Below are positions 20,646-47,497 of a stretch of DNA of 50,378 bases, piece by piece. The number at the start of each line of letters is the position of its first letter. Position 1 is the first letter of the stretch. The DNA lies in contig NC_068990.1 in assembly GCF_001194135.2 (NCBI RefSeq), forward strand, positions 7,679,700-7,730,077, written 5' to 3'. This DNA comes from Octopus bimaculoides (taxonomy: Eukaryota). The notes beneath the pieces were generated by a model. That model did not search any database. It had not been told where the DNA came from and saw only the letters and a list, made by a program, of their open reading frames with translations. The position numbers and the translations under genes were made by a program.

Positions 20646-20689
20646 CACAGATTTCGAGGCAACTTCTCCTTCAACTCAAGCCCCAATAT
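20646..20689 (-). CDS. Candidate 44-nt exon (phase 0 to 2): ILGLELKEKLPRNL
   Basis: ctattcag|ATATTGGGG...AATCTGTG|gtaaga; one open frame, compatible with the preceding 48-nt candidate; the paralogous spot at 22742-22811 is not frame-equivalent. Confidence 0.27.
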
Positions 20690-20871
20690 CTGAATAGATA
20701 CATTTCATAAGTGTAGAAAAACACGAAGGATGATCACAGTGTTAATAGCATAACACATGTGTTTATATGTGTGTAAGAAATAGGATTTTGAAGCTAATTG
20801 TATAAAAATGTAAACTTTGAATTATTAAAGTTGACCCAACACCAGAGCGCAATGTTGAAGTGTAAACTTAC

Positions 20872-20919
20872 CTCCGACCAGGAGTTTAAATCATTATCAT
20901 GCACACCATTCTCTGAAGA
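20872..20919 (-). CDS. Candidate 48-nt symmetric exon: SSENGVHDNDLNSWSE
   Basis: ggtatttacag|TCTTCAGAG...TGGTCGGAG|gtaagt; only phase 0 is open; duplicated at 23038-23085. Confidence 0.42.
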
Positions 20920-21154
20920 CTGTAAATACCAAATATGGTGGCAGTTAGAGGTCTTATTCTCAACTTTTATCAAAAGACTGACGAGAGAACCGAAGACATT
21001 AATATCATTGCGTTTCAGTAAGTAAAATAACAAAAACCATAGATATAAATAGTTGCTTCAAATTTAATATTAGACCAGCGACTTTAGTGGAATAAAAAAA
21101 AAAAAGATATCCCAGTACTTTACCTTATTGACCCACTAAGGGATGAAAAGTCAA

Positions 21155-22286
21155 TTTTGCCTTTAATGCAGTCATCCTTTATGACAATTCTTCCTCTTCT
21201 GTCTGCTTTCCCCTCTCTTCTAACCTGTACTGTGCATTCAATTTTCTGATTTTTCCCTCATTCTTGAGTTCCCTCATTATCCTATTTAATTGCCCCAGCT
21301 TTTTCCGTATCTTTTTCAACTTAAATCTTACTCTCTTCCTCCAGTTTGGTTTTTTCTTTTCCTTCCTTTTCTTTTCTGCAACAGCCTTCCGCTTGTATCT
21401 TATGATATCAGTTGCAACATTAACAGCAGGTATAATTAACTGGTTCATTTCACTAATGTTCTCTGTTTTAACCAAGCTCAAAACGCCATTTACATTGCTT
21501 GTGGCTCTCTTTACTTTTCCTCTTTCCATATAGCATAAGTTTGCGTGCATTTCATTGTTCACGCCACACATTTTATATCGCAGCATTTCTAGAATCTCCT
21601 CTTCATCGCTCAAATCTTGTTCAACATTTATTATTACGTGATTAGCTAGACCAGCATTATTTTCTTCAGCAGTCTCAGGTACATTTCAGATTTTGGGTTG
21701 TGCATCCCAAATTCTCTCATTATTTCTCTTCCTTTCCTGTCTATTTTGATTAGTTCCTTTAGAGTCCAGTTAAAGATATTGTAACTGTAATTTATAACTG
21801 GGACAGCTAGAGTGTTTTTACCTATTATCTTGTCTTTCGCATTGAGCTCTGTTTTCTGTATTAATGTAACTCGTGTTTAGCTTTTGTTTTTATTTTCTCT
21901 TTCATTTTGTGTGTGTTGTATCATATCTAGTTCATTGATTCCTAAGTATTTGTATGTCTGGCTTTGTTCTAATTCTCCTATTACATTTGCTTTATTTAAA
22001 GTGATGTTGTTCCTCTTAACTAGTTTCCTCTTTTCAAAATTGCTTTGACACATTTTCCTAAGCCAAATTTCATGTTTATTTCTTTGGTATATTCATGTAT
22101 TATCTGTAGTAATGTTTCCAGCTGCTTATTATTTGTAGGGGACAGTTTTAGATCGTCTATATGCAAAAAATGACTGATTGTTTTGCCATAACAGCTGTAT
22201 CCATATCCAGTTCTGTTTAGCAGCCAGATAAAGGTGTCAGGGCCAAGCAGAAAAGGAGTGGAGAAATCGTGTCTCCCTAGAATATT
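21155..22286 (-). mobile_element. R4/Dong-clade LINE remnants: RT core/thumb (22286-21680) joined to a pre-RT N-terminal segment (21680-21155)
   Basis: IF*GDTISPLLFCLALTPLS, SHFLHIDDLKL, INMKFGLGKC, TYKYLGI, NTLAVPVINYS; then KKPNWRKRVRFKLKKIRKKLGQL...EEELS*RMTALKAK, typical of the R4/Dong N-terminal region. Confidence 0.9.
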
Positions 22287-22443
22287 CTTCTTCTTCTTCT
22301 TCTTCTTCTTCTTCTTCTTCTTCTTCTTCTTCTTCTTCTTCTTCTTCTTCTTCTTCTTCTTCTTCTTCTTCTTATTATTATTATTATTATTATTATTATT
22401 ATTATTATTATTATTATTATTATTATTATTATTATTATTATTA
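22285..22443. repeat. (TTC)n-(TTA)n compound microsatellite abutting the R4/Dong RT truncation point
   Basis: Directly visible; switch from TTC to TTA at about 22372. Confidence 0.97.
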
Positions 22444-22769
22444 TGATAGTGATAGGGTGAGGCTCTCCGGATATCAGGCCTATTTTGCAGATATCATCTC
22501 ACTATACATTATATTGCATGATATCCAATATTACAACTACGATGCGCAAACAAAAATATAAATTTGTTCATTAATTTTTTTCAAGTTTGACATATTTACT
22601 GGAACTATATTAAATTTAGAGACAAAAAAATATAATCCACTGACGCCCGCCCGATGTTTATTGCCGTACTCATAATTTCATCCAATACACAAACACAGAC
22701 AAGTGTATATATCTATAGAAAAGATAAATTTGGCCAATCACCAAGGTACTTTCAAATTGGCCGCTCGTC

Positions 22770-23175
22770 AGGCTAGCAGCTAATTCTCCTTCAAAACACA
22801 TCCTAATAATTCTGAAAGCGAAACATTGCATGAGAAGTGTAGAAAATGTCACGAATGATTATTGTGTGGTGAGCTATGATATATGTATTTCCTCAAAACC
22901 AGAGTGGGGCTGGATAAAAAGCATGTGTTTATATGTGTGTAAGAAATAGGATTTTGAAGATGATTGTATAGAAATGTAAACTTTGAATTATTAAAGTTGA
23001 CCCAACACCAGAGCGCAATGTTGAAGTGTAAACTTACCTCCGACCAGGAGTTTAAATCATTACCATGCACACCATTCTCTGAAGACTGTAAATATTAAAT
23101 ATGGCGGCAGTTAGAGGTCTTATTCTCTACTTTTATCAAACGACTAACAAGGGAATCGAAAATTCATTGACAACG
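22770..23175. repeat. Copy 2 of the local direct duplication
   Basis: Aligns with 20640-21010. Confidence 0.93.
23038..23085 (-). CDS. Candidate 48-nt symmetric exon: SSENGVHGNDLNSWSE
   Basis: aatatttacag|TCTTCAGAG...TGGTCGGAG|gtaagt; differs from 20872-20919 at one base (D/G). Confidence 0.42.
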
Positions 23176-45395: not shown

Positions 45396-45964
45396 GACTT
45401 ATCAAAAAATAATGCAGCAAGCATTTCTCATAAGTCGGTGATAATTATTATATTATCTCTATGCCAAATTTGAATTCGGGATCCGTCTTCTGAAACTCAG
45501 CAGTTACTCCTTTTTACGCAAGTCCTTATAGTTAACACTATGATGGCTTATGCTGTGTATATTAACCCTCAAATACGGATTAACGATACATACATTGCTG
45601 GTTGCCGATAGGCGCGGTAGAAGCGAGCTGAAATGGTTTAGTAATTTCATGTATCAAATATTATAACAAGCAATATAACCTACTTGTATATGTGTGTAAA
45701 TGTCCGTCTTTGTGCAGGTGCTGGTGTTGTGGATGGGGGGTTATTTCTCTAAGGCGTTAGTTCGCAAACAACTACAACAACAGAAGGTACCATTAAAAAT
45801 TCGAATGCGGCAAAAAAACGAAACAAGACCATATTGACAGGTGTGAAGAAATGACAAATAATAAATAATTATCACCAAATCGTTGTTTACGAAACAGTGA
45901 TAGCTGAAGACATTAACATGGAAAAGGTAAACAGAATATCTATTATATAAACGGAAGCACTTAC

Positions 45965-45991
45965 CGGGGGTGTTCCTTTCCCTCTGCGTGG
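45965..45991 (-). CDS. Candidate 27-nt symmetric micro-exon: xTQRERNTP (phase 1) or PRRGKGTPP (phase 0)
   Basis: atattttgcag|CCACGCAGAGGGAAAGGAACACCCCCG|gtaagt; paralog of 47257-47283. Confidence 0.62.
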
Positions 45992-46454
45992 CTGCAAAAT
46001 ATATAACACATAATTATATGGCTATACTGTTACACACACACAAACACATACACACACACGCTCACACACATACATACATACATGCATACATACATACATA
46101 CATACATACACACACACACACACACACACACACACATACACACACACACATATATATATATATATATATATATATATATATATATGATTAATATGAACAG
46201 CCGTTTGCAATGTTTCGCCAAAAGGGAGAATTACAAACGTCATTAAATGTGACTAGGGTGTTCAATACTTGAAAGAAAGAGAATCCTCTAGCTCCCATTG
46301 TATTCTCATTTAATCTTAACTAAGTCAGTTGTTTGGGAAACACATTACAGTACTTAGAGTACATAGTAAAATGTGAGATGGATCCACCTATGGAAGTAAT
46401 AGATTTTCTCCCTCTTGGATATGACACTCGTATTATACTTTTTAAAGGTTTTGC

Positions 46455-46675
46455 ACACTCGAAGTCATCTCAAAAATGGAAAAGAGTTACTTGCACCATG
46501 TTGATTCGCGCCAGATATCGGAATGCCGATACACTGACTATTTTTCAGTGCATTGTGAACACTGTAAAGATGAGAGATGGACAGCTGTGGTCAGCAGGAG
46601 GGATACAACAGGTGTTCTGACTGTGTCTGCACGTCGAAGTTCATCCAACGACTGCAGCACAGTGTCTTAGCGTTA
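46455..46675 (+). mobile_element. Tc1/mariner transposase N-terminal remnant
   Basis: SQKWKRVTCTMLIRARYRNADTLTIFQCIVNTVK, then after a frameshift EMDSCG...RCSDCVCTSKFIQRLQ; resembles the HTH start of invertebrate Tc1-like transposases (recognition from memory). Confidence 0.55.
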
Positions 46676-47256
46676 TAAGACGGCTACGTAACGCTGCTGG
46701 GAGCTGTGTGAATGTGGTTGTGCATGTGTGTGTGAGTCTCCGTCTGTTTGATAGTATTTGTATATATATGTATGTGTGCTTGTGCACGTAATGAAGATGA
46801 TTTTAGTAGATGTGTTAACCAAGAATGNNNNNNNNNNNNNNNNNTGTGTGTGTGTGTGTGTGTGTATGTATGTGTCCGTTTTTGTACGGGCGTTGCTGTT
46901 GTGCATGAAGATGGGATCATTACAGAAACATCATAATACTTTATGATGTTTTTGTAATGATCCCATCCTCTACTTTTAATTTCTCTCCCATAAACAAGAA
47001 TCAAGACCAGATGGACAGGTGCGAGACGAATAGACGGCTTTATCAAAAGACAAAAACAAATAATAAGTGAGATCGAATGTTTGAAATTACTAGAATTGAA
47101 AAAAAAAATGTTATATCAATAACATGTAACTGCGATTGTGATTTTAATTTTGATTGAGTCGTTGTTTACAAACAAAAACAGGAATTAAATGATTCCAACG
47201 TAAAAGAACTTCACAGCAGTTCATTAGAATATCTATTATATAAAAGAAGTACTTAC

Positions 47257-47283
47257 TGGTGGTGTTCCTTTCCCTGTCAGTTG
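47257..47283 (-). CDS. Candidate 27-nt symmetric micro-exon: xTDRERNTT (phase 1) or QLTGKGTPP (phase 0)
   Basis: atattttttacag|CAACTGACAGGGAAAGGAACACCACCA|gtaagt; 21/27 identical to 45965-45991; phase 2 is closed by TGA. Confidence 0.62.
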
Positions 47284-47484
47284 CTGTAAAAAATATAAAT
47301 ATAGACATATTAATTATATAGATAAATGTGCATACATACATTTCTACCTTGCTAAGCATAAATTTAATAATGTAGTATAAAATAAGAATATTTTAATTAT
47401 GAAATGCACATAATAAAACATACTGGACAGATGCTGTAGATATGCAAGAAAGAAACCCAATTCATAATAATAGATTTGACTTAC

Positions 47485-47497
47485 CAGTGGGTCCTTG
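47485..47497 (-). CDS. Candidate 13-nt micro-exon CAAGGACCCACTG (QGPT, phase 0 to 1; or KDPL, phase 2 to 0)
   Basis: acttttttattcctatgttacag|...|gtaagt; 201 nt upstream of the 27-nt candidate. Confidence 0.45.

Follow-up and report, generated by a model that had tools for sequence, protein, structure and literature searches.

Neural micro-exons of bilaterians that depend on SRRM4/eMIC are up to about 27 nucleotides (nt) long and modulate the folded interaction surfaces of products whose genes are deeply conserved. Schistosome micro-exon genes (MEGs) constitute a family specific to Schistosomatidae, in which 10-20 micro-exons are separated by introns of up to 5 kilobases (kb) and the products carry an N-terminal signal peptide (bioRxiv 10.1101/2023.06.21.545858). 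In this work, we analyzed a stretch of 50,378 nt from Octopus bimaculoides (contig NC_068990.1, positions 7,679,700 to 7,730,077; the whole stretch is hereafter called the window), with a GC content of 34.5%, 13 N-gaps and abundant microsatellites. An earlier note, made from the letters alone, had proposed that most of the window belongs to the introns of a large minus-strand gene whose micro-exons are invisible to open reading frame (ORF) calling, and had listed eight short segments as its exons. That general picture was borne out by a gene model of the sister species Octopus vulgaris: three of the segments, of 27, 27 and 30 nt, are the counterparts of exons 3-5 of an annotated six-exon gene. 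Coding and long non-coding RNA (lncRNA) readings taken together, it is very probable that these are real spliced exons, and we lean towards a translated small protein from a micro-exon gene orthologous to that of O. vulgaris CAI9729219.1.

The link to O. vulgaris came from a protein search with the two conceptual translations of the earlier note, joined end to end, which returned a single match, CAI9729219.1 (A0AA36B7V7_OCTVU), a protein of 80 residues labelled "Hypothetical predicted protein [Octopus vulgaris]" in the database and with the full sequence MELFSKMFIKCKDIIAQFPEEQRPQLTGKGTPPPRRGKGTPPLPPRVRPPRPPGERKTQTDRQAEKETGKGEREKGGRRK. This protein contains QLTGKGTPPPRRGKGTPPLPPRVRPPRP, which is the phase-0 reading of segments 47283-47257, 45991-45965 and 40906-40877; its residues 25-52 correspond to the consecutive modules QLTGKGTPP, PRRGKGTPP and PPPRVRPPRP. 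The Pro/Arg-rich translation, given in the note as an alternative, is therefore the annotated frame, and the five-exon Thr-rich "mucin/stalk" frame that had been placed first is not. A translated search had been suggested for both readings, and only the phase-0 one found its match; the peptides of the Thr-rich, eight-segment reading occur in no protein of the database searched.

The gene encoding CAI9729219.1 lies in a 106-kb O. vulgaris locus (OX597823.1, GCA_951406725.2; hereafter L001) and comprises six coding exons of 45, 27, 27, 27, 33 and 84 nt, all bordered by AG and GT, with introns of 1.3-55 kb and an ATG-to-stop span of 86 kb. L001 80793-105967 and the minus strand of the window are colinear over ~19 kb, and the 12.1 kb of bases aligned between them show 90.5% identity; this region includes exons 3-5 and the terminal acceptor, their AG and GT dinucleotides being intact, and exons 1 and 2 fall about 70 kb and 15 kb past the right end of the window. 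Judged by this colinearity, the window carries the predicted 3' half of the CAI9729219.1 ortholog. The two species share the splice sites, the phase-0 frame and the terminal acceptor, with exons 3 and 4 identical, and they differ in the length of exon 5 and in the C-terminus and stop codon. Transcription and splicing of the window exons are predicted from the O. vulgaris annotation, which is an EVidenceModeler merge of Iso-Seq/RNA-seq assemblies (PASA/TransDecoder), protein alignments and Augustus/GeneMark predictions (PMC10700109).

The first supported micro-exon, on the minus strand at 47283-47257 (27 nt, symmetric, module QLTGKGTPP), is the ortholog of O. vulgaris exon 3 and is identical at 27/27 positions to L001 85720-85746, both species having the acceptor TTTTTTACAG and the donor GTAAGT; it sits in a 75-nt run of perfect identity. 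The second, at 45991-45965 (minus strand, 27 nt, symmetric, module PRRGKGTPP), is the ortholog of exon 4 and a paralog of the preceding micro-exon, and is likewise identical at 27/27 positions to L001 87161-87187, together with its acceptor and GTAAGT donor. The third, at 40906-40877 (minus strand, 30 nt, symmetric, module PPPRVRPPRP), has a GC content of 0.80 against 0.29 in its flanks and corresponds to the 33-nt exon 5 (L001 90054-90086), from which it differs by one in-frame CCG indel and three substitutions (90% identity), one of them non-synonymous (P/L) and two synonymous in phase 0; its AG and GTATGT are preserved in O. vulgaris. Both species keep the six splice dinucleotides of exons 3-5, as well as the extended donors.

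On the 3' side, the exon series of the earlier note was incomplete, having missed a terminal exon that starts at 37126. Its acceptor, ...CTATACAG followed by GGAGAGAG (window 37127/37126), is identical to that at L001 95883/95884, and its coding part (37126-37031, minus strand) is purine-rich, microsatellite-like and ends in GERKTQIDRQTDREREKGRERERERERGRDR before the stop. Relative to O. vulgaris, this exon contains a 77-nt repeat expansion, its ORF stops at TAG 37031, and the O. vulgaris stop context, GGTGGGAGACGAAAGTAA, lies out of frame at window 36983-36966. The microsatellite expansion thus shifts the frame, so that the C-terminal ~20 residues are not conserved, and the ORF, as compared over the part that lies in the window (exon 3 to the stop), is not kept complete. 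Just 3' of the gene's stop, O. vulgaris also carries ~4 kb of extra sequence (window 36838 corresponding to L001 96095-100061).

The possibility raised earlier, that further exons lie in N-gaps, found no support. The supported exons are clear of all N-gaps, gaps 46828-46844 and 40308-40370 are intronic and have both flanks colinear with the O. vulgaris locus, and no coding exon of the O. vulgaris model occurs in the stretches matching these two gaps; the window's three downstream N-gaps are past the stop codon. As exons are joined by splicing, gap length has no effect on the frame. At the 63-N gap, O. vulgaris has ~2 kb of extra sequence (window 40225-40682 corresponding to L001 90274-92774), and the true length of this gap may therefore be underestimated.

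Splice-like pairs do arise by chance, as the earlier note had cautioned, and the distinction between chance pairs and exons was quantified. All eight minus-strand segments are present with their AG acceptors and GT donors, both conceptual translations were reproduced exactly with joined frames open in the window, and five of the eight lengths are divisible by 3; greater GC richness than the flanks holds for seven of the eight, the 94-nt segment being the exception (0.37 vs 0.46). A generic metazoan splice-site weight matrix was used to score every AG and GT on both strands, and open segments of 10-100 nt with bounding sites at least equal to those of the listed segments were counted, with shuffles matched to local composition as the control. 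With thresholds that admitted all eight segments, the minus strand yielded 59 open candidates, the plus strand 52 and the shuffles 47±11; with those admitting the first five, the corresponding numbers were 15, 10 and 8.4±3.3 (largest 18). The AG...GT-bounded series as a whole is thus at about chance level in this AT-rich sequence, and with so many candidates, it is no surprise that some of them can be spliced into an open frame.

The outcome was distinct once a GC-island filter was added (GC content not below 0.5 and exceeding that of the flanks by 0.25 or more): five candidates, corresponding to four distinct segments, were retained on the minus strand and none on the plus strand, against a shuffle mean of 0.10 with a largest value of 2, and 0 of 300 shuffles reached 4. 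These four segments, 47497-47485, 47283-47257, 45991-45965 and 40906-40877, are neighbours on the minus strand, their GC content of 0.52-0.80 contrasts with 0.24-0.33 in the flanks, and the strong splice sites stand exactly at the island edges. The GC-island subset is therefore far above chance, and on one strand only.

Exons 3 and 4 appear as duplicated units that share only a ~74-nt block (85% identity), in which the exon core AGGGAAAGGAACACC is followed by the donor and by an 18-nt intronic element, TTATATAATAGATATTCT. The first copy of this element (47243-47226, minus strand) begins ~14 nt 3' of exon 47283-47257, and the second (45950-45933, minus strand) lies downstream of exon 45991-45965. 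The element is invariant in both paralogous units and in both species, occurring twice in the window, twice in L001 and nowhere else in the 156 kb examined, for a chance expectation of 0.03-0.06; RNA folding gave no structure for it, and it may be a splicing enhancer, or a mere mark of how far the duplicated unit extends. The paralogous exons differ at two Pro codons, and both differences are synonymous in phase 0. A high-copy repeat origin of the micro-exon units was discarded, since neither the 50-kb window nor the 106-kb L001 holds further copies of the exon 3, 4 or 5 units. Folding of the RNA around the three micro-exons gave z-scores of +0.5, -0.7 and -0.1 and a consensus fold of -3 kcal/mol with no convincing covariation, and no Rfam family matched the window at its gathering score. 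Matches to mir-297, mir-466 and mir-3149 at 40202-40450 and 46079-46145 (33-48 bits vs gathering scores of 85-100) coincide with (TG/TA)n microsatellites, occur on both strands and are artefacts of base composition.

The remaining segments of the original series fared less well. The 13-nt segment at 47497-47485 (minus strand) combines a GC island (0.62 vs 0.29 in the flanks) with strong sites (acceptor score 6.9, donor 10.8); its O. vulgaris counterpart, with donor GTGAGT, measures 12 nt by a 1-nt indel, and the length modulo 3 differs as a consequence: its inclusion would keep the frame in O. vulgaris and shift it in the window. As it is absent from the annotated model, we regard it as a possible alternative micro-exon only. 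The 94-nt segment (36600-36507) lies ~370 nt 3' of the O. vulgaris stop position, is no GC island, and acquires in O. vulgaris, through a 2-nt insertion, an in-frame TAG in the frame that had been proposed for it; no AATAAA or ATTAAA occurs between the stop and this segment in the window, which is uninformative on the transcript end. The two 48-nt segments (23085-23038 and 20919-20872) are copies within a local direct repeat, at least 14 kb past the stop, with weak acceptors (scores 2.3 and 4.1), and the 44-nt segment (20689-20646) has an acceptor score of -0.2. The direct repeat consists of two ~300-nt copies (20756-21050 and 22922-23217) placed 2166 nt apart, whose central 239 nt are 94.6% identical. 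Between them lies a 144-codon Lys/Glu-rich ORF at 21179-21613 (minus strand), in a layout that resembles a small terminal-repeat element; this ORF has no Pfam match and no protein-database homolog. A transposon origin of the 48-nt segments was unsupported, and a retroelement reading of ORFs 21179-21613 (minus), 42178-42644 (minus) and 44513-44800 (plus) found no significant Pfam match.

Compared with schistosome MEGs, the octopus gene shows the same arrangement of short exons with lengths in multiples of 3, much longer introns and longer terminal exons (bioRxiv 10.1101/2023.06.21.545858), its internal exons, which measure 27/27/27/33 nt for O. vulgaris and 27/27/30 nt for the window, falling among the short exons that define MEGs. 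Further resemblances are the taxon restriction, a predicted product that is Pro-rich, basic and disordered, and the difficulty that automatic ORF and gene calling has with such genes. The differences are considerable: the octopus gene has four micro-exons, which make up 114 of 240 coding nt in O. vulgaris, instead of 10-20; its introns span 1.3-55 kb instead of up to 5 kb; a heuristic check found no signal peptide, as uncharged runs in the N-terminal MELFSKMFIKCKDIIAQF do not exceed 3 residues; the protein searches turned up no homolog at all; and octopuses are cephalopods, not members of Schistosomatidae. Of the protein variation that MEGs achieve by optional use of micro-exons, the 12/13-nt candidate at 47497-47485 gives the sole hint. 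The likeness to schistosome MEGs suggested earlier thus holds for architecture, and fails for signal peptide, homology and micro-exon number.

The other parallel drawn in the earlier note, with neural micro-exon programmes, does not hold at the level of the gene. The octopus exons share with neural micro-exons a size of 27-30 nt, symmetry and a conserved flanking intron; those programmes act on deeply conserved genes, whereas the octopus host ORF is an orphan that consists almost wholly of micro-exons. UGC stands directly upstream of the acceptor in one of the three exons, 45991-45965 (TTTTGCAG), the other two reading TTTTTTACAG and ACATTTCAG. A further comparison is with spliced lncRNAs and with taxonomically restricted genes, orphan or de novo, that have small ORFs; with these, the octopus gene shares a short, low-complexity, disordered and partly microsatellite-derived ORF without homologs, and a C-terminus that is unstable between sister species. 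Unlike these, it is unusually long and has multiple introns, strictly symmetric micro-exons and an internal exon duplication.

According to the reading that we favor, the locus would be a very long minus-strand transcription unit, in which a first exon of 45 nt is followed by four symmetric micro-exons in phase 0 (three of 27 nt and one of 33/30 nt) and by a terminal exon of purine repeats, the share of the window being 47283-47257, 45991-45965, 40906-40877 and the terminal exon from 37126. Each micro-exon would contribute a Pro/Arg/Gly module of 9-11 residues, and the two GKGTPP modules would have arisen by local duplication of the ~74-nt exon-plus-flank unit. Exon recognition would probably proceed through near-consensus sites and the GC contrast, possibly aided by the shared 18-nt downstream intronic element. 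The predicted ORF includes the peptide stretch QLTGKGTPPPRRGKGTPP, and the predicted protein has an isoelectric point of 10.7 and is rich in P, R, K and G; the product would most likely be a short, very basic, disordered, PxxP-rich peptide restricted to Octopus, in which the RxxPxxP-like motif RVRPPRP could serve as an SH3-type docking site. A collagen-like reading was rejected, as GKGTPP does not keep the Gly-X-Y period.

Several observations weigh against translation, or against the gene model itself. In searches of 5.8 billion sequences by word index and of 1.84 billion representatives by exhaustive phmmer, CAI9729219.1 found itself alone, with no protein from other genomes, the genome of the window included, and Pfam gave no match for it either. 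The micro-exons are free of stop codons in all three frames, and the ~20 C-terminal residues differ between species by the frame shift described above. Exons 3-5 accumulate 3 substitutions in 84 nt against a background of 9.5% (binomial P = 0.036), yet among 60-nt windows only exon 3 is clearly elevated (top 1.6%), exon 4 ranking in the top 21% and exon 5 being average, and the intronic flanks are as conserved as the micro-exons; the expected peak of conservation on the segments is clear for exon 3 only. At 9.5% divergence this test has little power, and cross-species conservation was dropped as a decisive criterion; the paralog comparison is more telling. Furthermore, the CAI9729219.1 model could be an ab initio prediction, that is, one drawn from the same signals on which the earlier note was based, and its 80 residues are fewer than the 100-residue default of TransDecoder.

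Much of this would suit the first rival, that the exons are real and belong to a spliced lncRNA, the 80-codon ORF being fortuitous and the micro-exons untranslated, which we regard as possible, if on the unlikely side. The ORF is an orphan of low complexity without Pfam match, its terminal-exon portion is a microsatellite whose frame is not kept between species, the micro-exons are open in three frames, the other proteomes searched, that of the window's own species included, yielded no matching protein, and the exons are no more conserved than their intronic flanks. Against it stand signs of frame preservation: all four internal exons are multiples of 3, which for three independent lengths has a chance of about (1/3)^3, and the sole exon indel between species is of 3 nt and in frame. 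Substitutions lean towards synonymous in phase 0, with very small counts (2 synonymous to 1 non-synonymous in exon 5) and beside a frameshifted terminal exon.

A second rival holds that nothing is transcribed here: the splice-like pairs would be products of chance, and the O. vulgaris model an artefact of ab initio annotation drawn from these very signals. In its favor, open segments between AG and GT are, overall, as numerous as expected by chance, predictions by Augustus and GeneMark entered the annotation, and the product is an 80-residue orphan named as a hypothetical predicted protein. This explanation is nevertheless quite improbable, given the yield of GC islands with strong sites (five on the minus strand, none on the plus strand, 0.1 in shuffles) and the maintenance of splice sites, exon lengths modulo 3 and the 18-nt flanking element in two species and two paralogs. 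In addition, ab initio predictors rarely link 27-nt exons across introns of 20-55 kb without hints, and a model chaining such exons without junction hints seems unlikely.

A more ambitious extension of the favored reading would see here an Octopus-restricted MEG-like gene outside flatworms, whose basic PxxP-rich peptide would be built from duplicating symmetric exons of 27-33 nt and varied by optional micro-exons (47497-47485 being a candidate), with the 18-nt element as a dedicated micro-exon splicing enhancer; we consider this conjecture very doubtful. Finally, the eight-segment gene of the earlier note, with a Thr-rich mucin or stalk joined to the 94-nt exon or continued into the 48-nt exons, is largely refuted and scarcely credible, as the open joined frames and the good sites and GC contrast of the 13-nt segment stand against an annotated phase-0 frame that is not Thr-rich, a 94-nt segment past the stop that is not GC-richer than its flanks and is interrupted by TAG in O. 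vulgaris, a 13-nt segment that has 12 nt there, 48-nt repeat copies and a 44-nt segment with poor acceptors, and peptides present in no database protein.

Other features were recorded in the window. In the intron between micro-exon boundaries 45965 and 40906, the stretch 42968-43375 is the most conserved of the entire alignment with O. vulgaris, with perfect runs of 42, 139, 84, 65 and 39 nt and ~99% identity over ~400 nt, compared with 90.5% overall; it has no ORF of at least 70 amino acids, no Rfam match and an RNA fold z-score of -2.25, and may be a conserved non-coding element. Near the 17-N gap 46828-46844, positions 46907-46970 form a near-perfect hairpin of 30 base pairs (-44 kcal/mol, z = -11.4) with a weak, sub-threshold match to mir-2985. 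Only one of its arms is found in O. vulgaris, for which reason a conserved microRNA was rejected and the hairpin would reflect either an inverted duplication specific to one lineage or, so close to the gap, a fold-back artefact of assembly.

Repetitive elements were also observed. An interspersed family of ~150-230 nt, probably a SINE-like (short interspersed nuclear element) repeat, is represented by at least five copies in the window and by eight or more in L001, at 75-89% identity; it occupies 6033-6262, 29988-30508 and 44949-45394 on the plus strand and 23982-24160 in inverted orientation, and its fortuitous ORFs read ...RPRKDERQSRPRRNL... A long tract of (TCC)n, (TTC)n, (TCA)n and (CAT)n at 3974-5325, around a 478-N gap, yields long fortuitous ORFs, Glu/Asp/Gly-rich on the minus strand and Ser/Leu-rich on the plus strand, with no sign of coding.

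Taken together, the most fitting label for the locus is that of an orphan micro-exon gene or lncRNA, which the annotation of the sister species already includes in uncharacterized form; our results flag it as a gene annotated in O. vulgaris for which the searches found no matching protein from other genomes, the window's own included. If untranslated, it would be an ordinary spliced lncRNA, and a reason for caution with the "hypothetical predicted proteins" of evidence-merged annotations. If translated, it would represent a lineage-restricted micro-protein built by symmetric micro-exon duplication, and a possible small model for micro-exon definition within very long introns. In the AT-rich introns of cephalopods, a sharp GC island placed exactly between strong splice sites separates real micro-exons from chance AG...GT pairs, which motifs alone do not.

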